Source of the DNA: Thalia democratica
Taxonomy: Eukaryota
Direction of reading: 5' to 3'
Assembly: GCA_965202585.1 (NCBI GenBank)
Contig: OZ241826.1
Span: forward strand, 15,562,001 to 15,626,000
Length of the DNA stretch: 64,000 nucleotides
Position 1 is the first letter of the stretch; each line of letters starts with the position of its first letter. The position numbers were made by a program, and so were the translations under genes. Shown in pieces: positions 16,601 to 55,100 of the stretch. The notes beneath the pieces are model-generated. The model was not told the origin of the DNA and did no database searches. It saw only the letters and a list, made by a program, of their open reading frames with translations.

Positions 16601-19600
16601 TAAATTTATGTAATTTAAAGGTTATGTGGCACTAAATCAGGTGTTTTTGCTAATACAACCTGTGCTAAAATAAAAAAATACTCTATAGTTAAAATATTAT
16701 AGTTTAACTGCTTTACTTATATAAATTTTAAAAACAAAACAGTGACATAAAATTTTTGGTGTAACGTTTTGACAATATATATATATATAAACTAACTAGT
16801 TCTTCCCTGATCAGATGGCAGCTGCAGCGATATGTTGTCGATGCAAGCCTGCTTGAATATTTCTTGCGAGTGCAAGCAGGCCGGTGCTAACACTCTCATC
16901 ATGTAGTTCGCTTCCTTGCTACCTTGCGAGTTAGCCGCGACCCCGCACCGCCTGTTGCTAGCTCCCTTCGCCACCACGTGACGAACCCACTGTTGGTTAG
17001 GATGTGGTTAAAAAATAAATAGAGCATATTGGAATTTATTTGAAAAATAGTCATAGAAATTCGCTTCTGGTGTATTATGCAAAAAATATTACGAACCCAC
17101 TGTTTGGTTGGGATGTGGTTAAAGAAAAATAAAAAATGCACTTTTGGTATTATATTATGTAAAAAGGAGGGTTGTCTGAAAGTGATTTCGGGTATTTTTG
17201 TTGTACACTTGCATGAATTAGAATTTATATTTTTAGTTTATACAACGTTTGCATTAAATCTAACAGCATTTTGGACAACCAGTTTATCAAAAACTTAGTT
17301 AAATAAAATCATTATAAATTGGTTTAATTTAAACAAAACTTTTCAAAACGACAAGTGAAACACATACCTTATTCATGGCGTACTTGACGGTCTTCTTGTC
17401 TTCAAAAACCCTCCTGATAAGCAGTGTGGCCAGAGATTCGAATCCTTGGAACCCGTGTCTCTTCTTCAACTGCAATATGTGCTTCACTCCGTCCAATTGT
17501 GCGAAAGTCCAAGCTCTGCCGACACCTCCCTCGTCACAGAATCGCGTCAACCTGTTTGTAATATTATTAGTATTTTGATATGTAAAAGACCTCTGATGTA
17601 TTTTTATTTCTTTTAAAGTAGCCAAAATATTTTAAACATAAAATAAAAGTATTAGAACGCAAATCTCTTTTAAAAATTAGTTACAACACAAATTAAGTTA
17701 ATTATTTTGGTAGTATATGGTTGATATAATTTTTTTTTTCTAATTCTTTTTTACAACTTTTTCTACTTTATTTATAATTACATGGTCAATATATATATAC
17801 CTGAGCAGTAATCTCATGGAGGCGTGGATGGCATCACTGTGTAGGGGGTTTTTAATGAATGAAACGCAATACCTCACCAAGGCGCTTGAATCTTCCTGGC
17901 TTATCAACTGGTAGTCAGTTAGATTGATCTGGAAATATTTAGAAGTTATCAATATTACATTAACAAACATACTAAAAGCTTATATTTAAAATTTATCTGA
18001 TTTTTTTTTTGTTTTGCAAAAATTTAATAAAACAGTTACTCAATGTAATTTCAAAATGTTAAATGTAAGCTTTTGAATTTCTGAAAGTTTAGTTACAAAT
18101 CAGTCAATGTACGTACCTTTTTGCTATCGGCATCTTTTTTGGACTTCTTCACTGGTTTTTTGGCGTATGACGTCATAATAGGTCGCTTGTTGCCTGATTC
18201 TTCGTTGAACTGCAGCATTTGGTGGAAGTCAACCTTGTACCTCCTTCTACCCGCTGTGAACCTGTTTTTAAGAAATTAAACAAATAAATTTCTCAAGTTT
18301 ATTAGATCGGAACGTGTTAGAAAAAATTCTCAGGTTAATGTGTACAAAGACAACCTAAATGATTTTATATCTATGTAAATAACTAAACAAGTTTATGTTT
18401 TCCAATAACAAAAACTCGAAAATATATTTGAATTTCGATATCTGACTTCAAACTTTAATTGGACTGATTTTTTGTAGAAGAAAAAACGATAATCCACGAA
18501 AAAATACTTAAAATTTTAAAAAAGCTTGGTGAACAAAATCTTAAGTTTTGTATAATTAATTTGTTTTAAGACTTGGAATTAGCCAGCTACCTCACATGGA
18601 GATTGCGACACAAAATTTAAAGTCATTCAAGTTTGTTATGTGAAAGTGGTTAAAAGTTGAACTCTTTAATTTGTTTTTCATACTTCACATTGTTGAGGAA
18701 TCACAAGACAACATAAAACTCGTGTTACTTTAATTTATTTTAAATTGTCGTGGTCTGCTAAATGCTGTCATTGTTGTTGAAAGAATTTTTGTTTTTTGTC
18801 AAGAATTGAAAAACAATTTCAATATTTTGAATTTAAACTATTTCTGATTTTCAAAAAATATTTCAAATACTCTTTTTTACATAATTTCTCATTCACAATT
18901 AAAGAAATACACAAAAAATATTTTCAACCACATTGTTAACTCTACATCCAAAAACAGTTTTTTGAAGATTTGTTTTGAAATTACGTATTTGCGAGGTTTA
19001 ATGTAAAATAAATAAATATCAAGGCGCCCACCCAAAGTTGAAAAGAAAACAAAATTGGAGAATTTCATTTGAAACCGAGGCGCCATTGGTGATTGTTTAT
19101 TTACATGTTGATATAAATGTAGTCGTATTTAATATTTAATTGAAGTTTAATTTCAACTGGTAAAACAACTTTGTACTTGAGAGCTCTTTTGATGTTTGAA
19201 CAAACACGACTCGCACGCGTTGATTGCATAAAGACCGCATTACAAAGCGCGTTGTTAAAACTCTTAAATAAAAAATTTAGATGGTTGCAATCACGAAATG
19301 TTACAGCTGCTTGCGAAAGGTATCTCGTTACCAAGTTCAGCTGGTATTGCGCGCTCGAATTTGAAAAATACATTGCGAAAGCCACGTATGTATAAATTTT
19401 GTTAGTACAGCTACATGCGAACAAAAAACACAATTGTGTTTGTACAAGTTTGTAATGTGTTTATAAATGTGGAGAAAGTTTTTAATTGTTTGAAAATGTC
19501 CAAATATTTTTTTTCCTATTCAATAGCAAACAGTTACCTGGATTAGCGGGTTTTCAAATCCTGGTAAGTGCTCCTCTCTGTATTGAACGTAAAATAAACA

Positions 19601-25600: not shown

Positions 25601-28600
25601 TTAGGATTAGACGTTCTTTTCAACAAATATATGTCTAGATTATTAAAATATTTTGGATTGTTTGTATAATGTTGTCGTGTAATCCTATTAGAGAAGTGTC
25701 AATAAAACTTTTTTTTTCATACATGAATATCATGTTATTCCTATTGTGTTCATTGTATTTTTTTAGGATTAGAGGTTTTTATTGTAAATACTTTGACTTT
25801 TTTGAGTCATGTTGCCTATAATCCTATTAGACATAAATAGGCTTAGAAGTAAACTTTTTAACAAAACTGAATATAGTATTAGGTATGATAAATAATCAAC
25901 TAATCAGATACTTTTTTTAAACATTGTCATAATTTAAATATTTCATGCTTTTATTCAAGGTTTTCAAAAGGGGGAAGATATCAACAAAAAGGGAATTACC
26001 GCTCTAAATAAACTATAAAGTCTTAATTATTTATACATGGGAATCTGTATTACAAACTTTGGTGTGATTTTAAATTCAAATATAGAATTTACCAAGCCTA
26101 TTGCGACTGCTATCTTTTATAAATTCAAATATAAACACAAACTTTGGCGTGATTTTATCCAACGAAGTGGGGTACTCTTCAACAAACTCCGCTGCTTGAC
26201 CCAACAACTTAATGCAGGTCACAATGAGTCCCTTCTGTGAAACCACTTTCGCGCACAGTTCTTTTTGTTCCTGTGAAATTATAGTTCGTTATATTTTTGT
26301 TCCTGTGAATATTAAGTTTGTTATATTTTTGTTCCTGTGAAATTATAGTATATGCAAATAACAAATAAAACTATAGTTGATTAAGTTAAATAATGACGTA
26401 TACTTATGATTAAATTTAATTGAGATAAATAATACACGCATATTACAAAATCATTACTAAAACCACAAATTAGGTTTTTCATGTGAAACCATTTCTTCAT
26501 ATGTAAAACTGATGACTAGATGTTAACACAAAGAAATTTAAATTATTGGTTTTAGTTATACGCAAATCTTATAGGCAACAGACAAAAAATCGCAGTTTGT
26601 TAAAATTTAAACTTGTGTAAGGACTTGTGAAGAAAATTGCTAAAATTGACGTTATTTATTCAAGTATATTACACTTTTTTTTTCTTTCAAAATACAAGCA
26701 GAGAACTTATACAAACACTAATTTATTTGTGCAACATTCTATCCGAATATAAACTATTTCGTTACACAAATTTATTACTTCGAAAAGTAGACAGAACAGT
26801 AGCAATTTAGTTGCGAAGAACTCATTAAAGTATTTAATATAATTTATTATAAATTCTTACTTCGAAAAGTAGACAGAACAGTAGCAGTTTAGTGGCGAAG
26901 AACTCATTTAAGTATTTAATATAATTTATTATAAATTCTTACTTCGAAAAGTAGGCAGAACAGTAGCAATTTAGTGGCGAAGAACTCATTTAAGTATTTT
27001 ATATACTTTATTATAAATTCCTACCTCAAAAAGTAGGCAGAACAGTAGCAATTTAGTGGCGAAGAACTGGTGTCTGTTGTCGTCGTCAATCCACATCTGG
27101 GCGCCCTGATTCGGATGCATCATCGTAGCGTTGTACGTTCTGTAGTCGGTGTGGAGGGTTGATGCTGAATGATCGATCTGTAAATTTGTTTAAGTTAATA
27201 TTATCTGTATGTTTGTATGTTCTGTAGTCGGTGTGTAGTGTAGCTGCCGAATGATCGATCTGTAAATTTTTTTGTTTGTATAGGTATATTTTATATTATT
27301 TATATTTTTTGTAGTCAGTGTAGACTGTAGAGGGTACTGGCTGATTCGTCGATCTAAAATGAAGCAAATATTGGATTTTACTTTAGGTTTTAGATAGGAA
27401 TGTGAATGACTCGTACTATCGGGTCGAGAAATTAAATAACTTTCAATTTTTAGAAACATCTAATACTTGAGACAAGTTACAAAATTTATTTACAACAAGT
27501 AGAAAAAGTTAGTAACAATTTATTTAATCAGTCTACTTACCTTAGTTTTAACTTGTAAACACGTTTAACCAAACCTTTACTATTTCAGATGATTTTTTAG
27601 TTCAACTATATTTACAATTTTATAACAAAACTTACATCGGCAACAATGTTTCCAATAACTTTTTGCGACCAAGTACCACTGACTCTTTTCATGAGGACAA
27701 CTATCATATCACAAATCCTAGAAAAAAAATTAATAACAATTATAATAATTTTATTTATTTAATCTTTTAATGAGGACAACTATCATATCGCATATCCTGG
27801 AAAAAAAAATAATTAATATTATTATATTCATTTACTCTTTTCATGAGAACAACTATCATGTCGCATATCCTAGAAAAAATAATTAATAATAATTTTATTT
27901 ATTTAATCTTTTCATGAGGACAACTATCATGTCACAAATCCTGGAAAAAATAGACTTTAGTGTATAGCTTCTTAATGCATTGTATGCTTGAGTAACATTT
28001 ATTACAACTATTTTACGGCGAATTTGAAAATCAAGAATTACTAAAAAGTGCAAGTTAATAGATAAAAAAAAATTAACTTTTTTTTTGAAAAATTTCATTG
28101 AACGTGTAAAATCAAAAAAGTACAAAATTGTTATTACATAAACACACATGATTTGAGACAGTTTATTTATAACTTCTTATACAATTACACGCAGAATTTA
28201 TAATTAGAAACGAGACGTCTTAAATATCGATTTTCTAATTATAAAAATTGTGTTATGCAACGTTCAATACCGCCTCAGTTTTATAAAATTTATATTACAG
28301 ATATTTGCTCAGTTCAAAATATTTTTTGTTAGTTTTGGTTTTAAACTATTTACTTTATTTGTGTAAACAAATAAATATAATAATATAAGAAAAACACTAG
28401 TAATGTTTAAGCTACTATTTTACAATTTTCCCAAGTTAACACATTAATAACACTATATGCATTAACTTAATGATGTCGAAGCTAATTTTAATTATTCTTA
28501 TGTTGTTTTATCTATTTTCGAATGAAAAATAATAAACTGCATTAATTTATCGATTATAACAATTAATAAACAATTAATAAAATCATAAAAATCTGTAAAC

Positions 28601-31108: not shown

Positions 31109-34100
31109 GAATTAACTTATTTAACTTAATAAATTAAATTATTCACACTGAGCCCACCTTGAGGACTTTATTATTAAAAAGGTTTATTTAAAGATGCAAA
31201 ACTCAAAGGACTCGTTTACTGTTAGTGTTATTACTGAAAATTTTGTCTATTTTTATTTTAATTTAATTTCAAGCTACACATAAAAAAAAAAAACTTTTAC
31301 ATCAAGTTGTCACAATATTTCACAACTTTTGCTTCAACCTGCTGAATATTTTCTTCGGAGGGTTCCGGTTGCTGGGGCGGAGGGGGCTGTTGCGAGGCGG
31401 GGGGGACGTAGGTGCCCCTCACCCTCACCCTGGGCCTCCTGCCCCCAGCAACGTTGCTACCCGACGGTTGCGATGACGACGCCCTTGTGGCTTGCTCGAT
31501 CAGCGCGTTCATGTCCAACCCGATGTCCCGGATGCGACGGGCCGCTTCCTCCGTTGCCGGCTCGCTGTTGGGATGGGTAGGGGTTTGTGTTTGTGATAGT
31601 TTGAAAGTTAGTTACTTCTAAATAATTTTAAATTTTAAATAATTATAGTTTAATAAATATATTTTAATAATTATAGTATGGGTGTGTGTTTATTTGTGTA
31701 CCAATAAAAGTTATTACAATCAAATTTTATTTAGTAGTTAGTAACTCTTGTCAGTCCGAATGGTTTAAAACCGAGTATCAAAAAAGTTGCTGTTTCGCTG
31801 TTGGGATAGGTGGGGGTTTGTGTTTGTGATAATTTTAAAGTTAATAATTTATTAAGGGTTTTTTCGAGAAGATTATTTATTTTAATTGAATTTATGGTCA
31901 TTTCAGAAAACTTGGCTTTGCCAATAGTTTAATCAAACAACCTCAACATGTTATTAAATAACACAATATAATCTAAAATAAACTTACTTTCCGGAGATTG
32001 GAACTGCCACGCTCCTGTCGCCGTCTCTAGCTCTGTAAAAAATATTTTCATTTTATTTTATCTTTTTTAATACTGTTAGGGTTTCAAACCATCTAGCGTA
32101 TCTAAATTAGCTGATAAATACTGACCTCCACTGGTTCCTACTGCTGCCAGACATGAGAACCTGCTGTATGGGGACATTGGCGCCAGCTAGTAACTGATCG
32201 ATGGCGTTTGTAGTCAGGTCTGCTGGTGGCTTTGCTGAGTCCCATTTCTGTAAATTGGGTTAAAATAAATATAAGCAAAAATATATCAGTGTACTTCAAA
32301 ATTATATTGTTTTGTATATAGTGAGCTCTAAAAACGTTATTCAACAGCATAAACTAGGGTGAAAAAAATTTTCAAGACTCTAGTCAAATTGTGATATACT
32401 TTTAAAATTAATATAGATCAGGATTAGTTTGGGAGCTACAAATCTAGTAGATTATCATTTTTAGCCAAGCTCATTCAAAATAAAATATATACCATTATTA
32501 AATTACTTATAATTTTCAATATTTAAAGTATACAAACCACTTTATCTTCTTCGTCGAGTTTCTGTTTGATTATTTTTTCACCTTTTATGAGATGGCACAA
32601 TATCAGTATAACTGAATCGACGATTCTGCTGCTCTGTTTCGACAAGCAACCAGAATCCCATAACAACTGCATTGCTTTCAGTGAATCCTGTGTGGAGGAA
32701 ATTGGTTATAGATGATTTTTCTAATTTACTTTAGTTTATTTATTTTCAGCTGTAAGATTCAAGATAAAAATTTATATAAATTATAATGATTGTTCATCTC
32801 AGTCATCACTAAATGCTTAATTTCAAATTTTGTGCATCTTAACAAAAGGTTTTAGATACAAAAAGTACTTAAGCTAACATGTAATCAAGCCTACATATAA
32901 CACAAGTGTAGTCATTTACATTTTCCTAATCAAAACAAAGCCAAACACAACAATATGTACTAATAACAAAAATATAACACTTTACAAGTTATATACAGTT
33001 ATCCTAAATGAAACAGCATCTTCACTTAACTGGTTATAAAAAAGCCAAACACAACACACCTTCTGCATTTTGATGAGGAACCTAGCAGGAGAAAACGGTA
33101 TCACCAGCGGTTCCTCGGTGCTTCCGTGGGCGTTGTAGGGAGCCTTCTTGGTGTGAACGACGTGCGGTGATTGGAAGACGTTGGAGGGGTTCACCAGCCT
33201 CTCGACCAATGACAGCCACGGATCCAGGAAGTCGCTGAGAGTTCCTGCGCATACAGCTACGTGAGACAAAAAAAAATAAGGGGTGATGAGATTGTTTCAA
33301 TACTTAAGTTTTTTTTTTTTATACTTGGTACTAATACCAATTTACAAAGATTAAAAATTTTAACGCAGCCTTTGAGAAATTATCTTGACAACTTTTTGTA
33401 CTGCTACAATATTTTTTTAATTCTAAATATGTGTAGTATTTGATACATTTCTATGGTACAAAAAATATTGGTGTTAGACTTGTTAGTACTTATTTTTAAC
33501 TATTTATTTAGTTTGAAATATATAAATAAAAAAATTTTGTTGTCAGTAAAACCGAGAAGTATGTTTTCAATTTAATTTAAAAATTTGTTTAAATTTCAAC
33601 TTATGTCTTTTATTTTTATGAAAGCTAATTATATTTTAACATTTTTTATTTTGTTTATTTAAAACAGGTTTGTTACCTGGAATTTCACTGCTGTTCTCAG
33701 GGGACTCGTCATTTTCTTTTTCAATGTAGCACTCCAAAACCCACTTGAAGCAACTGTAAATAAGTTAAAATACTTATATAAAATATAATTATACCTTACT
33801 TGAGTTGTATAGAGCAAGTTTTACATGTAACAAAACCAACAAGACAAAATTACCAAGTAAGAAAGTATTTTCAGTTTTAAAACTACTAGTACTAGTTTGA
33901 TTTACAAATAATAATTTAACGTGTACTTTGTGAACAATCTAATTTGCATTCAAGCTGTAAACACTGTTATATACAAATAAATACAAAGAAACAAACTCGA
34001 ATAATGCTTGTTGAGCCTTGGTTCCGAGGAAGTACTGAAGCATGAGGTGGTAAGGCATCTTTTTATCATCAAACAACAATGGAAGAGTGAATCCCACAGT

Positions 34101-37100
34101 GCAAATGTAGAAGGTAACTCTGTGATAATTATCAATATTTAAAAATGAATTTAACTTTTATCATCAAATAATAGTGGTAATGTGAATCCCACAGTGCAAA
34201 TGTAGAAGGTGACTCTGTAAAAGAAGATAATTAACTACGAAACAAGTTACTAACAAAGGTTATTTTAAGATTTAAATAATTGAGTTACATCCATAATGAA
34301 ATGTATAATTATTAGCTCAATTTTTTACAAGAATGTGTGTAGGTGACAAATTAAACAAAATATATTTTTTGTGTTTTAAATTAAACTTTATATGAATCTT
34401 TTTCGCACCACTAAATTTTATTTAGAAATTATGATTTTCGATTTTAAAGGCACAAACAAAAGTATCCGCTAGGTGGCGCTATCGAAAGCGGATGTTGCGA
34501 AAAGTTTCATCGAATTAACTTACCACTTTCAAATTCAATTCTGTTTTCTTTTACCTCCATTTTGTTATGCTTTTTATGATATTTAGTTTTGTTAATACAA
34601 ATAATCTGCTGTTGCATTTAAAAATTTGTTCATAAGTTTAAAAACTAATAAACATACTTATTTATTAAGAAATTTTTTAACTACTCACATGTAAAAAATG
34701 AATACAATTCTTTACTGTTAATTAATTTCGAAGTAAATTTTCCTTTTCCAAATAAAAGAAATCTAATTTAGTCTTCAAAAGGATAAAAATTATATAAATC
34801 AAAACAAAATCTACCATAAAACCAAATTACATGCCACAACTTACATAATCTAGCTGCAAATGAAAACTTTTACTGCTGGCCACTTAACTTCACATTTTGG
34901 CAAGCAGCTGCGAGCTTAACACAACAATCAATTACCTCTCTCCGAAATCTCACTTCTAATTTATACATGCATATCAAGTTGCAAATTGGAACTTTTGAAA
35001 CGTGATACCTTCACATTCACACCTCGTACATTTGCTGCATTTAAAAAGCTGCGCCACAACCAGATCAAGCTGCAAAATCTGAACAGTTCCAACGCTTTTT
35101 GCGCTGCACACAACAAATAATTAAGCTGCTCTCAACTAGAATTAACGCACTCGCCAAAAGTTATTACAAAAAAAGTGATAAGAGCGCTATTTCTGGTAAA
35201 AACTTGAAAAAAAAGTCGAGCGCAGAGTTTCGCTCCAATCTGCTGCTGCTGAAACTTTTCAAGCAATTTATAACTGGAAGGTTGTTCAAACTTAGAGAGC
35301 TGTGCAGAAAGGGCGGTGCGCTCTCGATTGTTCTCGAATGCAGCATTGCAGCTAGTATCAGGTTGCTGCAATCATTGCAGGGAGACACGTACTTGCGCGC
35401 GCGCTCAACCGCGACGAAACGAATTGACAGAATGTTCTGGCAAATTGCGAAATACATCGCTTTTGGTCATGTGACCGCGATGGCTGGTTGATATTGGGCG
35501 AATTTGTTTATTTCGCTCAAGTGGATTTGTGTATTGAGAGGTAAATCTTTTGATAAGCTTTATATTGAATAAAATATAACTTTAACAAAAGATTGTGTAC
35601 GTTAAAAAGGTATCAATAGCTTAATACGTAAGGGGATGTTTTAACCGTCAAGATTTAGTATTTCAACAACAGAAACTAGCGTTGGCAACAAAAGATTAAA
35701 ACTTAATAAATTATCCAAACATATTTACCTTTTGTAAAGTATACCATTATAAGTATGTAATCGTATGGACCTTATACGTTTCAATGGGACAGGCAACAGC
35801 AACGGCAGCTGATAATCTTCAGCATTAAAAAGTAGTGTGTGTGCGTACAATGATATATTTGAACAACTTGTAGTGCGCGGCTTAGATAAGCTGTTCAAAC
35901 ATTCAGAATTCTCAGAAATGCGTGCCTAGTTTTGTTAACTTTTTGCCGTCATTAGTTTTGTTTTATAAACTTTGTAAGAGGTTGTTCACCCCAGTGTTTT
36001 ATACAAAAGGTGCGGAGATAGCAAAAAGCTGATGTATATATAAAATAAATCGTGCTTTTCCAATAAATTATATATATAATAATGTGATTGAATAAATTCA
36101 AACACTTTCCACAGAGCCCACTTAAAGGTTTAAGCATTTAGCTTTATGAAACGTATGTTCTGGTTTTTTTTAATTACTTTTCTTAATAAATTATAAATTA
36201 GAAATGGACATTAAACATATAAATCATTTAGCATACTGAATTGAATATGCTTTTACCATAATATTGCTTTTCACAAACAAAAACACAATTACTTTACGTA
36301 AATTTACTTTAAGTTTTAAATTTTAACGATAAAAATTATTTAATCACAATAGACTGCTAAATTATTTTAGCTTAATTTGTTGGCCAAATTATTCATCACT
36401 TAATGCAAGAAAATCGAAACAACTAAATATATAAATATATATACAACTAAATAAGTTATAAGGCCTAGGAAACTGTTAAACTTTTAAAACCTCTTGACAT
36501 TCATGCGCAGAGTATTTTCAATAAAATATTATTCTTACAAAAACTACTTCAGAGTCAAGTGCAAATTCCTTAGCTCATAAAAAATACACCCCTGAATACT
36601 TTCTCAATTTCAGCCTCAATTAAGCTGATCAAATACTTGACAAAAAACTGTTAATGTACAAAATAGGCCAACTCTATATCTAACTTGACCTCTAAATCAC
36701 ATTGCTAGAACATAAAAAAATCTAAACCGAATAAATTTATAATTAAACTACTCAAATTCAGACCACATTCAGCTGCTGAAAAACAAATTGCTTAAAAAGC
36801 GCGCTGGAATATGCTTGAAATTCCTCAGCTCATAAAAAAACATCCCTCGATATTTTCTTAATTTCATTCAGCTACTCAAACAATTTCTCGAAGACTATTG
36901 TTTTAAATTTAAGTTCTTTTTGTTGCTATCTATTTAGTTGCTCTCATTACATTCTACTTGATCTATTTCACATTACTAAACTAATGCAAAAATACCCTCA
37001 TAAAAATTTTTTTTATTCAGTTACTCGATATAGCTGTTCTCAAGATATGAAAAAGACGAAAAGGCGCGCTTGAATATGCTTGAAAATTCACTTCATTTCA

Positions 37101-40100
37101 CGGTCGAAAGATTTCGCTGAAAGTTGAAGCGAGGTTAAGTGAAAAGAGAGTCGAAATTTTCAACGAGTAAAATTTTTATCACGTAGCCACATCTTTTTAT
37201 TGTCGAGCAAACATCTTGCTAGCTGTTGCCTCGCTTTATTCATTTCACAGAACTTTCTTGCTTCTTTTTCAAAAAAATGGATTCTTTTCATCGAGGTTTT
37301 ACGGATGGTGGAAATATAAATTTCTGATTTGGTCAAGACTCGATAAATTGTTTTAAAAGGTGTGGAGAAAGTTACAAAATATTATGCAGAAAATGTTATG
37401 TATAACTTTGAACATCCCATTGCAAAAGGTTGAGGCTACTAAATGAATTAGAACTACTTCCCTTATAACGATTTGATGTAATTGTATTAATTGTGACAAG
37501 CATTCGACGTCTTATACGCGATTTGTAATCACATTCAGTCATGCTGTTCAATAAGTAAAATTTAAACCTACACGACCTATAAACAAATAAGTAAAAGTAT
37601 ACTTTTTATTAAAAACATTGCAAAAATATGTTCTCACAACAATTTATCCTTCTCTAGTTCAATTAAAATTTGTTTAACTTAGTATGTCTCTTAACTAGAT
37701 TTTAATATTTACAAAATTTCGTATCTTAACAAAGCAGATAATTAATTTTTACTTTTTTTGACAAGTTGTCAATTTAAAACATTGCTCAAACTTACAACAC
37801 AATGAATAACTGTTTTTTATTTGCTAAAATTACAAAATATTACATCAGTTTAACTAAGTTGATATTTCAGCGAATAAGCACACTTACTGAAATATGCTGA
37901 TTTTACATTTTACATTGCTAGAATATTGCAAAACATTTGAATTTGAATTATCTATTGAATAATTGGAAATAAGATATTACTTGTATTAATACAGGAAGTA
38001 TTCGAGGAACTAACAATATATCTTTTTTGTATGAGAAAATTGCTATACACTTCCTCATAAAATTTTAAATTATACTAAAATCACAAACAGAAAACTTTTT
38101 AGTGAGTTTTGTCGTCTTGTTCATGTAATTGTAGCAATTTAATTGTTCAACTTTGATTTTTTTTTAAGTTTCACTTTAAGCTCATATCAATTCAAACTAA
38201 TGAATGTATTTTTACTTATAAATCTATTTTTTATGTAAGTTTAATCCGATGTGAACAATTTAGAAAGATGTGCAAAATTTACAGCGTGCAAAGTTTGACA
38301 AACTACATCAAAACCAGAAGCTTTCAAATTAAAAAAAAATTCTCAGAAAATGACAAAATAACTTGGTTCGAGGCAATATATCAACACATGTATGACAGAT
38401 ATATTAATATAATTAAAAACTGTTCACATCAAATATAACATCAAACTTCATATAAGAAACACCCACACAAATACAAACAGCTTCAAACGCATGAAGTGAA
38501 AATTTTTTATATTAGTGAAAAGAGCGGCAACTTTATGTTCAATGTTGGCCGCCCAACACAGCGTATAATGTATATGAAAATGTTACGCAACTTCTATGTA
38601 CGTGACTTGCATCTCGTGTTGCTCACACGCGACAACTAGCGGTTAGAAATTTTAAGACATTAATTGAAGTTTAAATTTCATTGTGGTTTGTTCTAGAAGC
38701 TACGACTAGCGGTTAGTATAATTTTATTAAAAAATATTCAATTTTGATTTTTCTGTTAAATTTGCTGTAACATTTTTTAAAGTTTTTAATTTAGACTAGA
38801 CATCAAAAAATCTCATTTATACCACAAAGTACTTTTGATTCGAAAGAGTAACCTAAAAATAAAACTTAAGTAATACTTATACAAACCTTAATCTTTCAGG
38901 GGTATCCAAACTGAGATCATCCCATTTCATAGAATCGGATAATATTTCGCAGAGGCACCTCGATAACCGTCTGCTTTCCCTCGATTGTGCGTACAACTGA
39001 GTCTGGTTATTTTCCTGGCGATTTCTGTGTTAAAAATAAAAAATATAATTTAATTGCCACGAAATCAGAGCGTGGCTAGTGTTTCTGAAGAACATTTAGA
39101 TTACACATCTAGTAATTATTATCATATTCATACATGTACTACTGTATTGTAGTGTCTCATTTTAATTATTGTAAAGGTCTGCATTGTAATAGTGTCCAAC
39201 ATGGTTCCAACATCTTAACATCTTTAAAAAGGATAACAGGCTTATTTAGTTCTTTGATTCTTTTTAATTAAATTGAGCTTTACCTTTTATTTTTCCAACC
39301 AAAAATATTAATATTTCAGAAAAGTTATTTCATAATACATGAAAAACTAACCCACATAGGTTTAATATTATTTGAATAACTTTAGCAGACTGAATTAATC
39401 CAAGCAAACAAACCTGGACAAGCTGTTGATGGTGTTGTTTTTCGGTTGCTTCTGGGCCACACCGTGTTTAACCAACAACCCGAGGAACTCAGATATGGAT
39501 CTGACTATTTTGCTGGTCAATAACAAAACTGGTTTCAGTTTCCTTATGCGCACAGACAGCAGTGGTCCTAACAAGTTCTGTTGGTGTGATAAAATATTTA
39601 AACTTATTTTGTTAACATGCAAGTTTTTAAATGGACATATCATGTGGTGAACGCGTGAGAAAAGTTTAGTTTGCAGCTTTTACACGACACCAGATCACAA
39701 GTTTTACAAGAATTAGACCTTTTGTAGAGAAATTAAAATTTCTATAGAATTAGAAGTATTTATAAAAGAGTTTATTGTCATCATTTTTCGTGACCTTGAG
39801 GATTTTAAACTTATTTTTAACTTTAACCAATCAACAAACCTTGAGCTTTTTGGTGGCACGGTTCTCGTTCAACGCGATGTTGATGTCTGTCACAATATCC
39901 TCCTGCAGGTTTTCAAACCTGACATGCTCAATAAGATCGTCTTGCATCAATTCCACCAAGTTCCTTACATCTGCAAGAACATATAATGAATTATTAACCA
40001 TTTATTTTGATGTCAGTGCGTTGTTTCAAATCATACTGTTACTAAAGGATCTCAAAAGTTGAAGGATAAAGTTTGATTCAAAGATTTACTGAAAGCAATT

Positions 40101-43100
40101 ATATCATTTCTTAAACTCTTCGAACGCACAAAATCAATTAATAAATTTGATATTTTGAAAGATGTTTTTCTCGTTTAAATTATTGTCACAAACAACAAAA
40201 CATACCTTGTCCATAAAAAATTATTGTCCTTTTAACTATATTATTTACCGAAGTGATAGGTCTAGTAGGGGTGGAGGTGTTGCTATCCTTTTCAAAAATT
40301 CGCTTAAAGTTATTAAAGTTAAAAACGATTCTATCTCTACTAGCAACATCAATTTTGAATACCTATGTGTAGATGTAATTTTTAAAAAGATGAAATTAAG
40401 ATTTTGTTGTGTCTACCTTCCTCCACTGTCTGCTAGATGCGCACTGACTGTTCAAAATGTAATCAAAATGATTAAAATGGTTTTAAGAGTGTTCTTTTTA
40501 TGTTCTTGGTGATTTTAATATGCCAAATATAGATTGGAGGATTCCTAGCACAGATTTCAATAAACCCCATGAATGTTTTCTTAATTTTTGTACAGACAAT
40601 TTTTTAACCCAAGTAATTGAAAATCCAACCCATAAGAATGGTAACATTCTTGATCTCATAATTTGCAATCATTTTGGTCTAGATAGAATCATATCACACT
40701 CAACTAATTTTCCATTAACAAACACTTGTGACCATAACTTGCTTTCACTAAAAATTAAAATTGAAAATAAAGTAGTACCTATTGCTAAAAAAGTCTCATA
40801 TGACTATAAAAAAGCAGATTTTAAAAGCATCAATGATTTCCTGTCAAAAATTAATTGGACCTCTTTATTTAAAAATTCAGAAAATCTCCAGCATTTCTAC
40901 GATCAATTCATCAGCTCAATCCAAATCTCAATCAAACGTTTTGTTCCAATTTTTTCTAAAAATAACAAAAGTAAAAAATATCCATCTCATATTAAAAAGT
41001 TATTAAAAGAAAAAGCGAATCTATACAAAAAAAGTAAGACAAATAAATCACTTTTGATAAAATACAAAAACAAGTCTAAAGAATATCAATTAGCTGTTAA
41101 AAAATACAACTTTGAATATGAAAACAAATTCTGCAAAAACCCAAATTTAAAAAAGTTTTATAGCTACGTGAAATCTAAACTTAAGTTAAATAATTCCATA
41201 CATCTCTTATATGATAATGATAAAAACAAAACAGTAACCTCAGATTTTGAAATAGCAACACTTTTCAACATAAATTTTCAAAAAGTTTTTAAAAAAGACG
41301 AGAGTTACCAGTCTTTTAAGCTACCCCAAAAGAATTGTAATAAGATGCAAAATTTTTTCATAACCTATGAAGACATTATAAGTTCAATTAACCACTTAAA
41401 AGATAAAATCATAAGAACGCCAGAAAACATTCCACCCTATTATATCAAGCATGTTATCCAATCAATAATATTTCCACTTTCATTAATATTTAATTGCTCT
41501 CTAGAACTATCTGATGTTCCTAAACAATGGAAAACATCTTTTATTATTCCTGTGCACAAGAAAGGTAATATACACGATGCATTAAATTACAGACCAATAT
41601 CTCTAACAAGTGGCTTTTCAAGAATTTATGAACATATTGTATCTGTAAAAATTCTCAATCACCTCTTTGATAACAAATTATTAACTAACAAACAGTTTGG
41701 TTTTGTTCCAAACCGCTCATCAACCATTCAACTGTTAACATGCTTACATTCTTGGTTAGTTCCTTATCTCAAAAATGAATTTACTAAAGTAGTTTATACG
41801 GATATTCAAAAAGCCTTTGATTCAGTATCACACAAAAGATTATTAAAAATTTTGAATCAGTATGGGCTACATGAAAGCTTAATTGATTGGTTTGATAACT
41901 TTTTAAATAATAGATCACAAAGAGTACTCATCAATAATACGCTTTCTGACTCTTTAACAATCTACAGTGGAGTACCACAAGGTGGAGTAGTTGGTCCCCT
42001 TCTCTTTTTAATTTATATTAATGATATTTGTTCAAACATTGATATTAAAAGTGAGTTAAGCTTATTTGCAGATGATGCCAAAATCTTTAGTCAGTCAAAT
42101 ACTTCATTACAACTATCATTAGATAATATTTACTTATGGTTAAAAACAAGAAAACTAAACTTAAATCCTAGCAAATGTAAAATTCTAACCATTAACAAAA
42201 AAGAATCTTCTCCAACTGACCTCTTAATCAATAACATCAAGTTACCAGAAATTAAAGTTTTTAAAGATTTAGGAATTTATAATTCCAAAGATTTGAAATG
42301 GAATGAACATATCAACTATTTATATAAGATTGCAAAAACTACATGTTATCAAATATTGAAAAGTTTTAAAACTAATTCTGCTTCAATTCTGACAAAACTA
42401 TTTAAAACATACGTTCGCCCTAAACTTGAGTTTAGTACCCAAATTTGGTCACCCCATTTAAAAAAGGATATTAACAAAATTGAATCTGTGCAAAGGAGTT
42501 TTACCCGTCATATTTGTAATCGTTGCAACATATCTTACACGTCATATAATGATAGAATGATTAAATTTGGATTGAAATCACTGGAATATAGAAGATGGGA
42601 ATTTGATTTATTAATTCTTTACAAAATTATCAATGGCAAATATAAAAGTTTTTTTAACCAGTTTTTTAATTTTTCCCAAAATAAATATCAACTAAGAGGA
42701 AATAATTTGAAAATAAAATGTAAACATGATTTTCAAAACAGTCAGTGGCAAGGCGCATTTTTTCACAGAGCAAAAGCTATGTGGAACAGACTACCTCAGG
42801 ATATAGTATCTTGTGAGAGGGTAGAACAATTTCGTTTAAAGCTAAAAAGATTTGACTTAAATACGATAAATACCAGTAAAATTAACTAATTTTCCACTGT
42901 AACAAAAAGAAAAATATTCGGTTCCCTACGCCTCCCCCCTACAAACTATTAGTTTACTTATATATTTTGTAGTTATGAATATTGTTTTATAAGCCATGAT
43001 TTTAGACAAACTTCTTTACTGTGTGTACTAAGTAATATATAAATTTGAATTTTTTGAACTGAATTTTCAATTTAGTTCATTTGTTTATCATATTGTGTTT

Positions 43101-49100: not shown

Positions 49101-52100
49101 TTATTAAACAAAACAAACCGATGGGTTCAGCGTTTCTCCTTCTGCGCATGGCGGGTAGGTATTCAGGAGTAAGTAGGACGTTGAACAACTTCTCAAACGG
49201 GTCACAATTTAGGAAGGTTTCCAGCCCGGTTGAGTTCAAACACAAGGCACTGTTGAATGTTTTGACAATTAATAAATAATCAGGTATATTTTATATAAAA
49301 ATTAAAAAACTATTTATTACTTTACAGCAAACTAATTATTGAAACGCTTAAGAAACAAACTATTGATAATTGTTTATTTCATTTACACTAGTTTACTGAT
49401 TATTTTATTGATAATATTGTGAATTATTACTTGTTTATTCAGCAATAGAATTTTTAATTTTATTAGTTATATTGTTAATCAGTTTTTCAGTTAATTTTTA
49501 TCTCAAGGCTCTTAATAACTAAAAGGTTAAATTTGTGGCACCAAGTCAGTTTTACAAGTAGATTGTTATAATTTGTTTTCATCTTATTTAAACAATTAGA
49601 AATTTTATTTAAAATGATAGTTTTATTTTAAAGTTAATTCAGTTGCATAGTTTGTTTGGATATACTCCAACTTAAATTGTTTCATTTAATTCAATTATTT
49701 TGATGTTATAACATAAACAATTCAAATAAAAAAATTGTTATAAAACCACTTTTCATTTTGCAAAACAGATGTTTCTATTTTAATACTGTAGGTGCAATTT
49801 TTAATAACAGCATTCAATTGACAATTTACTGCAAGGTTCAATGACTTATCAAGTCAGGTGTAACAATTTAACAATGGATTGTTTATTTCATTCGCAATAA
49901 TTATTTAATTTTGATATACGTTTGAATTATACGTATAAGTTACGAAATATTGAACAAAGTTTTAGAAATAATTCAGTGTAATTAGACACAGCTAATGAAA
50001 ACAAGATTTGATAACAAACTAATTAAGCAAAACATGTTTACCAAATATGTAAGAACATAAAAGCTAATTAGATAAATGAGCTCAGCTTAGCGGATTAAGT
50101 TTATTTATAGATATCAAAATTTCTGATAATATTTTAGTTCGTAGAAAATCAAACAATTTATCAAAATTTTTAAACGACTAACTTTTTGTGGTTATATATT
50201 TTATTACTTAGAATTTTAATACAAATATAATTGTAAACAATGCTTTAATTTTAAAAATAATAGCTTGTATAATATTATTATTACCTGTAAAAGCATTAAA
50301 CCTAAAATCCACTTTAACTTTAAGTTTTTTTTTTGGTACTCTTTAAGTTTTTTTTAAATACTTTTTACTCACTCCAGTACATTATGCAATAAACACTCAA
50401 ACACCAGGTTTATGTTTCAGTTTAGCTTAAATAAATACATAAGTTTAAATAATTTTATTACACTTATATTTTTGAACCCACTTTAGTACATTAACGAATA
50501 TACAAACACTAGGTTTATGTTTTTGTTTAATGTAAGAAAATTTTAAATTTTAATTAATTTTATTATGTTAGGACTTACCTGTTAGACACATTAGGCAGTA
50601 TTATTATTTTATATTTAATATATTTTAATCACTTGAGTACATTATTCAGTTAACATACAAACACAAGATTTATGTTTAACTTTAAGTAAAATATATCTAA
50701 ATTTTTTATTATTTTATGATTTTGTAACATTTATTTTTAAACCAACCTGAGCACATTAGGCAGTGAAGCGAGCACTTCTCGGGTGGCCGGGGGATTTTTC
50801 ACCAACAACGAGTGCATTATGACGTCAGTGAGCTTTTTCTCCTGCAAGTACCTAAGCAAGGATGGTTCCTGGTACACGTAGTGAGTCACTACCTCCATCG
50901 CTGTGGATGGAAAAGATAAATTATTTTCTTTACAAGAACAATACTGATTATTTTACCAAAATTTAAAACGCTTACAAAATAAAGCAAAGCTTTAAAACAT
51001 TAGAATAAATATTTTTACTGACTACAGCAGTAGTTATTTTTAGTTACTAAAACACTTCCGAGTTATGCCTACCAGTCCTAAAATATTTCTTAGTCTTACG
51101 ATAGTAAGCATTTTAACCAATCTAGAAAAACAGTCTTATAGTTTTGTAACCATTAAAATCCCAAAATTTCAAGTATTTTTTTCGCTCTCAAATCAATCTA
51201 CGTTTAAATAACAAAAACAAACCGAGCAAGAAGAGCGGACTCCCGTAGAACTCTGCGTTGCCAATGATGTGCTTCAGTGATTCGGGCAGCGATCCCTGCA
51301 TCATGTTTCGCACCGTGTCGGTTACGGACTGGTTGTTCGAATCCATGATGGCTTTCTTCAGGAAGTTCAGAACCGATTTGAACAGGGCCTGGCGCTGCGG
51401 GAAGCATTGCACTCCTGTGTGGTAGTAGTTATTTTAGTTATTAATTTTTATTTTCGATTTAAAAGTTAAATTTTAAAACATTGTAGATATTGAATACTTA
51501 TTATTTTAATACGAAATCAAGAAACTATATTGAATTTAAATCTTATCAATATAAACTCAAAGAAGCTAAAATATGTTTTAAGATTGTTTAGGTGTTTAGG
51601 ACATGTATACAAGTGTCAAGTGGACTATTAAACATTCAAATGTAAAAAAAAATAAGTGAAAATTTCCATATCCTAAAGATGCTTAATTTCAGAAAACCAA
51701 AATCTTAAATTGCAATCTTAAGAGGAAAATACTTTTAGTCAGTACTTTTGTGCCTGGTGTTGCGAGAAGCATTGGACTCTTGGACTCCTGTGTGGTAGTG
51801 GATTGGTTTATTTTTTAAAATGGTCGCTTTGTAGTTTTTAATTTTTGCTGGCAACACATCAAACGATTAAATTTATATTTAACTAACGAGATTGTTTGTT
51901 TGGTATAAATGAAAAAATTTATTCATATCCAGTTGTTCAAAATAAATTTAATATGTGGAACAAAACATATATAATATATGATTGTTTTTATATTTTCATG
52001 TTATCCCAAAACTATCTACCAGGATTATAATTGTTCGAATCAACGTCCATACTTTCAGCGGATTGAATTAAATTTGAAAAAAATATAAATAAACAATTTA

Positions 52101-55100
52101 CCAGGTTTGTAAGTATTGGTGTCAACGTCCATACTTAATATTAGACATAATTAAATTTGTATAATTAAATAAATAAACAATTTACCAGGTTTATAGGTAT
52201 TTGTGTCAACATACATACTTTCAGCTTATTGGATAAGTTTATATTAATAAACAACATACCAGGTTTGTAAGTATTGGTGTCAACATCCATACTCTCGGCT
52301 GACTGGATCGTGTCAACTTCCATTTCTGTGTGGCTTGTGCTACCGCTTGAACTGGCTTCGTCTTTATTTAAAATTATTATACATAATAAATAACTGTATG
52401 AATCAACATAATCTCATTGTTATTACGAACTAGCACCAAAGTTTGTACAGCAACTAGTAACCATTAACTATCATGTTTTTAATTTCCAAGATATCAAATG
52501 ATCCAAAAAAAACTATAACACTTGGAAAAATACATTAGTTAAAAAAGTGATTTACCTCAATTTAAGTAGGTATACTCAAAACAATATACTACAGGCTTAT
52601 TACATTACTTAAAAGCAACCTGAATTTTAGTATGTGGGTAGTCAAAAAGTGGTGTTAATAAAAATAACACCTTGCTTAGTAGGGAAGATTACCTGAGTTT
52701 TAATCAGAAAGATAGTAACTGCAAGGTAACGCTTAAATATCTATCTTACTAACTAGTTTTAAGTAACATAAGTAACAAACCTGAATCTCAAGTGGGTACA
52801 AGTAGGTGCTTATATGAATATATCAACTAAAAACATAACAAATCTATGTTTTTAGAAGGAAGATGAAAATTACGAGGTGATTTTTATATATGTAATACCA
52901 CCTTGTATATATAATACTTAGTACAGTAGATTACCTGAATTCTTAGTAGGAAGGTGGTAACTACAAGGTATTAAATGTAATTAACACCAAACTAAATTCT
53001 TAGTAGGAAGGTGCACTCTTGCAATTTTGTACGCTCGTGCAAATTTGTACGCTCGTGCAAATTTGACAGCTACCCACTTATATAAGTGACATACTAACAA
53101 TTCAGCAAACAAACCTGAACTCTTAGTAGGAAGGTGGTAACTACAAGGTGGCGTCTTCTTCCTGCAAATGTCGACCTCGTGTTTCAGCCTGTCGATGAAC
53201 ACCTGCAATCCGTTGGCGTTCTGGAAGGACTGCCACTCTATGTTGGTGATGAGGTCGATCACCCGCACCGCCCTCGTCACAAACTGTTTAATGTTGTCTA
53301 GGTAAACAGGCTGCGTGCAATAAAAAATAAAAAAAAACTCGGTTGGTTTAAATAATTTTAAAACATCTAATTTAAGTAATAAGAGTTTAGTTCGTACCCT
53401 TTCGATTTTCAAAAATGTATACAGAACTTTTTTTTAATTATAAACGAACTTAATTAAAAACTAAGTATTTTTATAACTTATCGTTTTCTGTTCTTAACTA
53501 CAGATTTTAAGTTAATATGATAAAAAACTTAAAGATGTACAACTACATCAAGTGTGTTAGATGTATAACTACCAACAACACCAAAACTAACAGTGGTTTG
53601 CTCCTGCTGGTCGCCCATGTTAGTGACAACTGATAACAGTGGCACCATCATGCCGCTGTGCACCAGGGAAATGCCTCCTTGCTCGAAAGAGGACAGGTGG
53701 TAGAGGAAAGAGAAGAGAGCCGTGGCGAAGCTGTGCGGAAATTCCGCCGATCCGCCTTCTGTGTGAGTTATTTTGCGTAATTTTATTGTTACCATATCGT
53801 TTTAGATGTAAATTGAAGCGATACATGTTAAATTTATTAATTATTATTCTACTTTCTATGAACAATTTCTATTATAACCATATATAAGTTATGCAAAAGT
53901 AATTATGTTTTTAATTTTTTGGCGAAGCTGTGCGGGAATTCCGCCGATCCGCCTTCTGTTGTGAATATCATTTTATGCGAAAAAAAGTATGAGATTACAT
54001 TTACAGCTATTAATGCTTGAGTATTTTCTTACTACATTAACTTATTTCAATTTTGATTGAAAAGTTTTGCAGATTAATTTAGATCATTTAACGATCTGTT
54101 TTTTTTTTTTTGAATAAAACTAGGTGAAAATCCACTAATCCGCCTTCTGTTATTCAGAGTACTTTGTAAATTTATGTCGTGTGTAAGATAACGCTGGCAA
54201 TTAATTAGCAATCGAATTTTATTTAGCGGTTAATCCTTCTTGGTATGTTAAGGGTCCGACCGGATCAAAAATCAACAAAGTTCGATCAGAATTCTACAAC
54301 ACATAAATACTGTGCACTTCTAAAACAGGACATTCTTATTCAAGTTATTTTCAATGTTTGAACTAGTGCTGTTTAATTTTTTAAGTGGGCTAATAACCAT
54401 GTTTAAAACAACAATCGTACTTACGTTTATCTGATTTGGTCATGTTTTCAATGCATCTCCTCACTAAGACAGGCAGGAATCCGTGATACTGGGACATACC
54501 TGTGAAAAAATTTATATTAAAAAAATAAGGAAAAAAAAAGTCAAAAAGGTATAGTTAATCAACCACATTGAGCCACATGACACAACATGGTAGATACCTA
54601 TTTATACTAGATTTTTATTATAACTATATAACTAATACTGTCATATTATTTACCAGGCACTGAAACATACCAGTTAAAAATAAAGATTTAAATAGCTAAT
54701 AAAAAAATAATGAGCTACATGGTAGAAACCATGAGACATACCCGCCATTAACTCATATTATTAATAACAATATAGATTAAAATATTACATTACTTCCAAC
54801 ATACCTGTCACGTCTATAATTGAAGACAGCCTCGAAGGTCTATCTCTGTTGTCCAAGTGGACTATGGATGTGAGGGTCCTTAAAGCGGCAGCTTTAATGT
54901 CCTGTTTATATTAATTTTAATTTTAAATATAAATTATTTTTAGAGTCCTTTACTTTAATTTTAGCACTAAGACATTGATCAACTATGGGTTTTTTTTGTT
55001 ATTCTAATTTATCAATTTAATTTAAACACCTTTACGAGCCAAAAAATTTTAAAAGGCTTACTTATGTGTTATTTTTGATAAATTATATAAGTGTTTTTAA

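Follow-up and report, generated by a model that had tools for sequence, protein, structure and literature searches.

The minus strand of the 64,000-nucleotide (nt) stretch of Thalia democratica DNA analyzed here (contig OZ241826.1, positions 15,562,001 to 15,626,000; hereafter "the window") contains the greater part of a gene for a HUWE1-type E3 ligase, and one intron of this gene holds a partial copy, or "echo," of the start of the exon that follows it. The echo repeats the exon's acceptor and its first 19 codons; it differs from the exon at seven positions, none of which alters an amino acid. The duplication is present in reads, the acceptor used in RNA is the one proximal to the rest of the exon, use of the echo leads to a stop codon or a frameshift, and the differences are distributed in a mosaic, non-randomly silent pattern. 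Our explanation, which we put forward tentatively, is that the echo is a non-coding relic of a ~95-nt duplication that still exchanges sequence with the selected exon.

Searches with Pfam located WWE, UBA/UIM, and DUF913 domains in open stretches of the gene, and tblastn with full-length orthologues showed that its exons span ~62100 down to ~4900. The exons that concern us were delimited with a set of contigs, X4. Searches turned up no run recorded as RNA, and X4 is not labeled as such either; we treated it as RNA because its contigs skip introns exactly. All read-derived contigs were placed on 32500–36500 only. The features of the locus are as follows (a slash marks a splice junction):

38887..39024, minus strand: upstream exon ("exon 25"), ending ...GATTAAG/gtttgt; its 3' end at 38887 was set by RNA, whereas the 5' end near 39024 is a reading of the sequence only (acag/AAATCG).
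34251..34345, minus strand: candidate third, decayed copy, with indels and no open frame; local alignment score of 13 to the echo.
34215..34236, minus strand: echo acceptor, ...gtagttaattatcttcttttacag; the acceptor is also written ttatcttcttttacag/A.
34156..34214, minus strand: echo, a 58-nt copy of the exon start (A plus 19 codons) followed by one A; seven silent differences, no indel.
34120..34155, minus strand: 36-nt spacer between the echo and the live exon (GTTAAATTCATTTTTAAATATTGATAATTATCACAG), holding the live acceptor and an in-frame TAA.
33997..34119, minus strand: live exon ("exon 26"), 123 nt, phase 2-2; cacag/AGTTACC...TTCGA/gtttgt.
33677..33753, minus strand: downstream exon ("exon 27"), 77 nt, from X4 contigs 18 and 19 and a frame check.

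Exon 26 encodes (R) + 40 residues + (D). The segment is strongly conserved in metazoan HUWE1, with orthologues reading (R)LTFYICSVGFTSPMLFDE-K, and two of them (P0024 and P0035) matched 34121–33996 in tblastn. Spliced X4 contigs join 33997 to 33753 and 34119/34121 to 38889; they also contain the junction between exons 28 and 29, read as 33060/32687 after a frame check. The four introns confirmed in this region measure 243–4767 nt, the intron between exons 25 and 26 being the one of 4767 nt (~4.8 kb).

The echo was apparent as a direct repeat on the plus strand (34061–34123 vs. 34156–34218): 63 nt, 56 of them identical, at a spacing of 95 nt. On the minus strand, 34214–34157 corresponds to the first 58 nt of exon 26, displaced 95 nt upstream into the preceding intron. 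It reads ttttacag/A GTC ACC TTC TAC ATT TGC ACT GTG GGA TTC ACA TTA CCA CTA TTA TTT GAT GAT AAA; the live exon starts cacag/A GTT ACC ... ACT CTT CCA TTG TTG TTT GAT GAT AAA, and the two share one 19-residue translation. The differences (window positions 34211, 34181, 34180, 34178, 34174, 34172, and 34169) comprise five at codon position 3 and two at the first positions of Leu codons, the latter belonging to double-hit Leu swaps between exon and echo (CTT to TTA and TTG to CTA). A preliminary description of this DNA, made from its sequence, had claimed an acceptor echo of 19 codons with seven substitutions and no amino-acid change, and the alignment and translation bear it out; the two Leu swaps and the intact acceptor that it listed are likewise in the sequence. 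It had also placed a possible donor, GTTAAA, directly after the copy. The GT is indeed there (GATGATAAAA/GTTAAA, 36 nt from the live acceptor), but one extra A precedes it, so that the echo "exon" would be 59 nt long, not 58.

The 63-nt repeat at 95-nt spacing takes in the ACAG acceptor and 58 nt of exon and adjoins the live junction, as a relic of a junction-spanning duplication should. An AG with a pyrimidine tract is present upstream of the main acceptor (tcttcttttacag/A, 34215–34227); the echo has 14 pyrimidines in the 20 nt before its AG, compared to 10 of 20 for the live acceptor, whose tract in the spacer is weak. The 36-nt intronic parts of the two units align weakly (score 5; P ~0.01–0.02 relative to shuffles and to other intron 36-mers), having TAATTATC...ACAG in common with a 6–7-nt indel. 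The score of the candidate third copy was reached by 0.9% of 216 other windows from the same intron (P ~0.009), which suggests that the repeat family was once larger. The 95-nt unit is absent from the output of Tandem Repeats Finder. Protein searches do find the echo: the live-exon peptide (window 33999–34118) matched it in a search of its own genome with an E-value of 3.2e-6, and orthologue proteins matched it in tblastn as well as they matched the exon.

A copy that is not used should decay freely, and this one has not. The proportion of silent sites that differ (pS) is 7/12.8 = 0.545, or ~0.97 with a Jukes–Cantor correction, i.e., near saturation; the corresponding proportion for non-silent sites (pN) is 0/44, and there is no indel. 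Seven random hits would leave the amino acids untouched with a probability of 2e-5 to 1.2e-4; under a model of silent-only drift in the exon and free decay in the echo, the probability is 2.5e-4 to 8e-4. We conclude that the silent-only divergence of the echo is not due to chance. The differences are also unevenly placed, as two further features illustrate:

34183..34211, minus strand: identical tract, 29 nt, equal to 34088–34116 of the live exon.
34169..34181, minus strand: difference patch, 13 nt holding six of the seven differences; ACA TTA CCA CTA TTA in the echo vs. ACT CTT CCA TTG TTG in the exon.

Given which positions can change silently, an identical run of at least 29 nt has a probability of 0.009. 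That six of seven differences should fall within 13 nt has a probability of 0.002, and silent sites in this patch are essentially saturated. For the five-codon, 15-nt patch taken alone, the probability that all six changes are silent under free decay of the echo is 0.001–0.003. Such a mosaic of identical and diverged tracts is what a family subject to conversion would exhibit, and it points to gene conversion with the live exon.

Is the echo present in the animal at all? The preliminary description had itself noted that a collapsed-haplotype artefact, absent from single reads, would undo its claim. We examined contigs from two read sets: X1, which probably comes from the source individual, and X3, from another study and under another organism label ("organism B"). 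The individual is very heterozygous, which is the one circumstance in favor of an artefact of assembly or haplotype collapse: the X1 contigs come in two versions that look like two haplotypes, ~7–8% apart in introns. Both versions, however, start at 34187, within the echo, and continue into the intron upstream. In X3, which is from a separate study and is 6–10% diverged from the window in introns, contigs cover the acceptor edge of the echo and the spacer. Moreover, the assembly holds a single copy of the locus, and, at 0.545, echo and exon differ silently about five times as much as alleles do. The duplication is real DNA, not an assembly artefact, and the probability that we accord to the opposite view is close to nil. 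Nor did any paralogue capable of donating the echo codons emerge when the 802-Mb assembly was searched with a 261-nt stretch, the exon peptide, and the WWE exon: these searches returned this locus only, and a paralogous donor was therefore rejected.

The read variants available to us represent about one-tenth of all differences found. Among those listed for X3 are differences at 34124, 34219, 34220, and 34223. Three of these lie in the acceptor tract of the echo in organism B (plus strand: 34219 A>T, 34220 A>T, and 34223 G>A), converting ttttacag to ttaaacag. No X3 change inside the echo is among those listed, and we draw nothing from that. In exons 28–29, organism B differs from the window by at least 8 silent changes and 1 non-silent change on 73 silent sites, i.e., by at least 0.11. 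Compared to this baseline, the pS of 0.545 implies that the split between echo and exon exceeds by several times the depth sampled between alleles or sister lineages.

The RNA-like contigs reveal which copy is used. X4 contig 20 extends from 34030 to 34121 and then has a loose end that matches 38889–38918 exactly: exon 25, which ends at 38887, is spliced to the proximal acceptor at 34119 across 4767 nt. The copy spliced in X4 is therefore the one contiguous with the rest of the exon, as expected if the other is a relic. No X4 contig is present in the echo region (34122–34241), and the X4 depth in the bin 34108–34241 is fully explained by 14 nt of contig 20. X4 is a small set (47 M letters), and assembled contigs drop rare forms, so low-level use of the echo could escape it. 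The preliminary description had implied a usable exon, entered from exon 25 at 34214. This is not supported: the X4 contigs contain no such junction and join 34119 instead, and any use of the echo yields a stop codon or a frameshift.

Reading through from the echo acceptor gives ...GAT GAT AAA AGT TAA (...DDK-S-stop), a 95-nt extension that does not keep the frame, with the TAA two codons after the copy and far upstream of the last exon junction. Terminating instead at the GT, the 59-nt echo exon would shift the frame whether added to the 123-nt exon or swapped for it, and would need a 36-nt intron. A mutually exclusive pair can be dismissed on the same grounds, as the lengths differ by 64 nt and the sole GT lies 36 nt from the next acceptor; the echo in place of the exon was ruled out by that 64-nt difference. 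Three other schemes were also ruled out: an in-register removal of 95 nt (there is no AG/GT at any shared position), splicing from the echo donor AAAA/GT to the internal AG after AAAAAG (one base off frame), and a recursive splice site (there is no GT after the echo AG). The only scheme that keeps the frame employs a 38-nt mini-intron, from AAAA/GT to the second AG of CACAGAG, and would produce a tandem insertion of 19 residues (57 nt). We judged it implausible in view of the missing RNA support and a length far shorter than that of the confirmed introns. The echo does not qualify as an alternative coding exon. When the duplication had just occurred, a correct mRNA could be made only through the proximal acceptor, so the lineage of the echo has been non-coding in cis since its birth.

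These considerations bear directly on the proposal that the echo is translated now or was so recently, whether in a truncated HUWE1 with the C-terminus ...LLFDDKS, as the 19-residue insertion, or as a once-functional duplicated alternative exon. Translation would predict just the protein-like pattern of substitution that is observed, and the mini-intron as read from the letters would add exactly 57 nt in frame. But X4 gives no RNA support, an intron of 36–38 nt is far below the four confirmed ones (243–4767 nt), the echo covers 58 of 123 nt and not the full exon, and at birth an in-frame mRNA was possible through the proximal copy alone. Furthermore, echoes on the donor side of other exons, which ribosomes cannot reach, exhibit the same pattern (see below). 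Translation of the echo is very improbable.

Two observations on exon 26 emerged from the same contigs. If 31-base words are assumed, the contig ends at 34059 and 34030 in X4 and X1 suggest that position 34029 is heterozygous, with two expressed alleles appearing in X4; in the live exon, this base is the last of a TTC codon for Phe. Also, one X4 contig matches the window to 33991, six bases beyond the exon 26 donor, and then continues for 255 further letters (ACTGTTAGTAATACGTCTTG...) that are found nowhere in the window.

Could the echo be preserved for its own sake, as a decoy or "poison" acceptor whose use produces an early-stop transcript that is removed by nonsense-mediated decay? Its pyrimidine tract is clearly stronger than the live one and lies upstream of it, and by sequence it should compete; its use would bring a stop codon two codons after the copy; and its products, once degraded, would not show up among assembled RNA contigs, from which rare variants are dropped. 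The lack of any nonsynonymous change or indel in 58 nt, despite saturated silent sites, would also suit selection on the sequence itself. However, selection on an RNA element gives no cause for changes to be confined to codon position 3. The three listed organism B changes fall within the pyrimidine tract (ttaaacag), and the acceptor thus does not look constrained. The donor-side echoes, too, are silent-only, despite stops in their spacers and, in one case, the loss of the GT. No notable local RNA structure was predicted (the fold of 34040–34300 is weaker than those of shuffled sequences, z = +1.4), and Rfam has no family in 32000–39500; a structure that hides the echo acceptor was rejected on the basis of the same z. 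We consider a decoy function unlikely, though deserving of some weight.

The echo is not alone. Comparing the window to itself returned 46 short-range tandem pairs at offsets of 41–374 nt, many of them purely intronic, and 12 tandem families overlapping the edges of exons, at acceptors as well as at donors. All 12 were measured in the frame of the live exon, with copies split at ≥75% vs. <70% identity. In copies at least 75% identical, the differences at codon positions 1:2:3 number 15:3:62, most of the position-1 changes being Leu swaps; copies below 70% identity have many non-silent changes. The average pS in the window is ~0.4. Donor-side echoes display the silent-only pattern despite stops in their spacers, and one does so without its GT; because these stops cut them off from ribosomes, translation cannot be the general cause. 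The silent-only, mosaic divergence of the echo is real and belongs to a gene-wide pattern.

This census also allows an assessment of the plainest alternative: a neutral relic, in which the exon drifted silently, the echo by luck went unhit elsewhere, and the most extreme of many cases was picked. Tandem duplications of 70–260 nt are indeed very common in the introns of the HUWE1 gene, and older copies clearly decay (e.g., 54144–54112, the 53189 family, and the candidate third copy above). Set against this are the low probabilities given above for the echo (2.5e-4 to 8e-4) and for its patch alone (0.001–0.003), and the census comprises all exon-edge families of the window, without selection. 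Free decay would place ~22 of 80 differences at codon position 2; there are 3. Aligned 40-nt intronic flanks have 17.5% mismatches and 15% gap columns across the families, whereas the copied coding parts have no indels and differ by 4.0% at positions 1+2 and by 27.7% at position 3. Positions 1+2 have thus diverged about a quarter as much as the flanks, while about half is expected under free decay. Finally, silent divergence in exons matches the divergence of introns between haplotypes (~0.1), meaning that the exon drifts no faster than the echo should decay. A neutral relic is, in our estimation, a doubtful explanation.

Equally doubtful, in our view, is the notion that exon-edge copies in the introns of this genome, the exon 26 echo among them, have long been under protein-like purifying selection even though ribosomes cannot read them in frame. 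If true, it would call for an undescribed mechanism, such as a frame- or exon-identity-aware process acting on intronic copies or widespread cryptic use of the copies in transcripts that ordinary RNA assemblies miss.

Exchange with the live exons, the explanation that we tentatively favor, finds a counterpart in the composition and the distribution of the variants. Silent changes from exon to echo run in both directions (25 strong-to-weak, 18 weak-to-strong), and the GC content at third codon positions is 0.48 in echoes and 0.55 in live exons, compared to a GC content of roughly 0.1–0.25 in intronic repeats; the variants accordingly look as if they arose under the exon regime. In the ladders of copies at exon 39 (27684–27939) and exon 11 (52021–52296), silent variants are common to differing subsets of the copies, all four combinations of two sites are present, as exchange predicts, and copies that lie farther from the live exon are not steadily less identical. 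These features suggest exchange among the copies.

Three more arrays in the gene were observed. At 61545–62041, four tandem units of 123–128 nt (70–82% identity) overlap an N-terminal HUWE1 exon, and orthologue proteins match three of the units in turn (62097–61936, 61873–61784, and 61762–61661); this looks like a ladder of near-complete copies of a coding exon, extending beyond a mere exon edge. Exon 40 (26769–27273) has an acceptor-side echo at +82 nt and, on its donor side, an array of three more units that likewise recur every 82 nt. Each of these consists of a 42-nt in-frame copy (14 residues) and, after it, a 40-nt GT...AG spacer; all five variable coding sites are silent. At 12355–12583 are donor-side echoes of an exon end (11 residues). 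A stop codon in the spacer precedes the nearer copy, whose 33 nt contain 7 differences, all of them silent, and whose donor GT has been lost (GAA/ATATGT).

How might the exon 26 echo have come about? An old tandem duplication of ~95 nt would have crossed the 3' splice junction, comprising ~36 nt of intron, the acceptor, and the first 58–59 nt of the exon. With the spliceosome taking the proximal copy, the distal one would have been absorbed into the 4.8-kb intron. Such junction-spanning duplications may be tolerated because a correct mRNA is still possible, and there are a dozen in the HUWE1 gene. Thereafter, echo and live exon would trade sequence by ectopic gene conversion or unequal exchange within a small repeat family, in the setting of a very polymorphic population. 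Protein-changing variants would be lost whenever they were copied into the live exon; silent ones would pass freely and persist in the pool of the family. We infer that exchange is the cause of the silent-only pattern and, with no more than moderate confidence, regard short-range exchange between the echo and the selected exon as its most economical cause.

Forward simulations of the Wright–Fisher type were used to explore this mechanism, with non-silent changes lethal in the live copy only, two-way conversion, and recombination between copies. When conversion was well above the drift threshold, non-silent echo variants were purged (pN/pS of 0.04–0.17), and silent divergence between copies approached the diversity of the whole family pool. 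From a baseline of 0.067, the simulated silent divergence was 0.10, 0.18, 0.13, and 0.29 for 2, 3, 4, and 5 copies, respectively, a growth with copy number that is uneven from one single run to another. Every feature, even the way in which ladder copies share variants in a mosaic, was reproduced in its direction by these models.

Several points weigh against exchange as the full explanation. The simulations under-predict the amount of divergence, which is 0.545 here and ~0.4 on average in the window, relative to a baseline of at least 0.11. The simulated probability of at least 7 silent changes with 0 non-silent ones is 1e-4 to 1.7e-3 for two copies and ~1e-2 for five. Cases with at least 5 silent and at most 1 non-silent changes are ~10 times more common in the window than the two-copy model predicts. 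Within the 13-nt patch, identical runs are too short to seed exchange on their own. A weaker point is that no live exon with echo codons, or the reverse, is among the read variants listed (about one-tenth of the total). The size of the silent divergence is thus incompletely explained by exchange, which fits the simulations in part. A simple gene-conversion equilibrium, or selection to escape conversion, was rejected: no two-copy regime in the simulations gave a pS of ~0.5 with a pN of ~0. A frozen echo, with all change on the exon lineage, was also rejected, as the echo copies of the ladders differ silently from each other; in addition, position-3 divergence is not below flank divergence in young arrays.

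The exchange that we envisage has precedents and differs from each of them. In the theory of small multigene families (Innan; Teshima and Innan), a functional gene and a linked non-functional copy undergo concerted evolution through conversion. Mosaic tracts, selection on one member that shapes the other, and pool diversity that scales with copy number are common to that theory and to our case; here, however, 58 nt of an exon edge at a distance of 95 nt are involved, not whole genes, and the silent divergence exceeds the value that the simple model yields from the diversity measured. Tandemly duplicated, mutually exclusive exons (Kondrashov and Koonin, 2001; Letunic et al., 2002) are also adjacent coding copies with their own acceptors and mainly silent divergence. 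The echo, by contrast, covers only part of an exon, lacks a donor that would keep the frame, is not used in the X4 RNA contigs, and encodes an identical peptide. With poison exons and decoy sites coupled to nonsense-mediated decay, the echo shares an intronic splice site whose use brings an early stop; it differs in having no inclusion in X4, a codon-like rather than base-by-base conservation, and an acceptor tract that varies between the two lineages sampled.

Internal gene duplications that span exon–intron boundaries are said to have been described by Gao and Lynch in 2009, and intron gain by tandem duplication is the subject of another paper (PMC4974935). Models of this kind likewise feature two splice sites after a small junction-crossing tandem duplication, one of which restores the mRNA while the other copy becomes intron. 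They predict free decay of the copy left unused, in contrast to the HUWE1 echo, which has neither a non-silent change nor an indel. The human F7 gene has a minisatellite in intron 7 made of 37-bp units, the first of which spans the exon 7/intervening sequence 7 (IVS7) boundary, creating a row of pseudo 5' splice sites (PMC1557585). The innermost unit is the live exon edge with its splice site, the exon-adjoining site is the one used, and the extra intronic copies have intact-looking splice signals, all as in the present case. The HUWE1 echo differs from F7 in lying on the acceptor side, with two clear copies and perhaps a decayed one, a 95-nt unit, and 19 codons; its copies are old and differ only silently, and many junctions of the gene are affected.

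A full-text literature search found no description of silent-only exon-edge echoes. The sole orthologous locus fetched, L008 (GCA_037179515.1), encodes a 61% identical peptide from a single exon copy and has no echo, and it is too distant for dating. Its positions 18301–18928 hold a long short-period array with offsets stepping by ~8 nt; there are no exon-edge echoes like those of the HUWE1 window. The open reading frame of the exon had no exact-protein record, and the 72-residue open stretch had no word-sharing homologue.

Junction-spanning micro-duplications have been proposed as a source of intron growth and of alternative splice sites, and the unused copy is normally assumed to rot. The HUWE1 echo instead keeps the amino-acid meaning of its exon up to near-saturation of the silent sites, and copies at a dozen junctions of this one housekeeping gene do likewise. 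If exchange is responsible, this genome would offer a clean natural system in which to measure gene conversion at very short range, and how it interacts with selection, in a hyperdiverse animal, and signals that resemble a ratio of nonsynonymous to synonymous divergence (dN/dS) could arise in DNA that was never translated. If exchange is not the cause, something else constrains the copies. Annotation is affected as well: where an echo of this kind retains intact splice sites and an open frame, gene predictors will be misled by it, and so will exon calling based on similarity.

Other elements occupy the introns of the gene. On the plus strand, opposite to HUWE1, an intact open reading frame of 789 residues at 40520–42889 contains an RVT_1 reverse-transcriptase domain (E-value 3e-32); one of 116 residues lies upstream of it (40162–40512). 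The former is probably a young retrotransposon of the non-long-terminal-repeat class. At 35984–36251, the word depth of the contigs is 3900–6900 in X1 and X3 and 800–950 in a marine metagenome (X5), and contig ends and strand switches are numerous, marking a repeat of very high copy number with an inverted structure inside intron 25. The same intron contains a segment (35207–35564) with a GC content of 0.42–0.50, above that of its surroundings, and long open stretches on both strands that match nothing in Pfam or Rfam. Only 7 of its 358 positions differ in organism B, as opposed to 6–10% elsewhere in the intron; the segment may have been inserted recently, or it may be an intronic element that is conserved.

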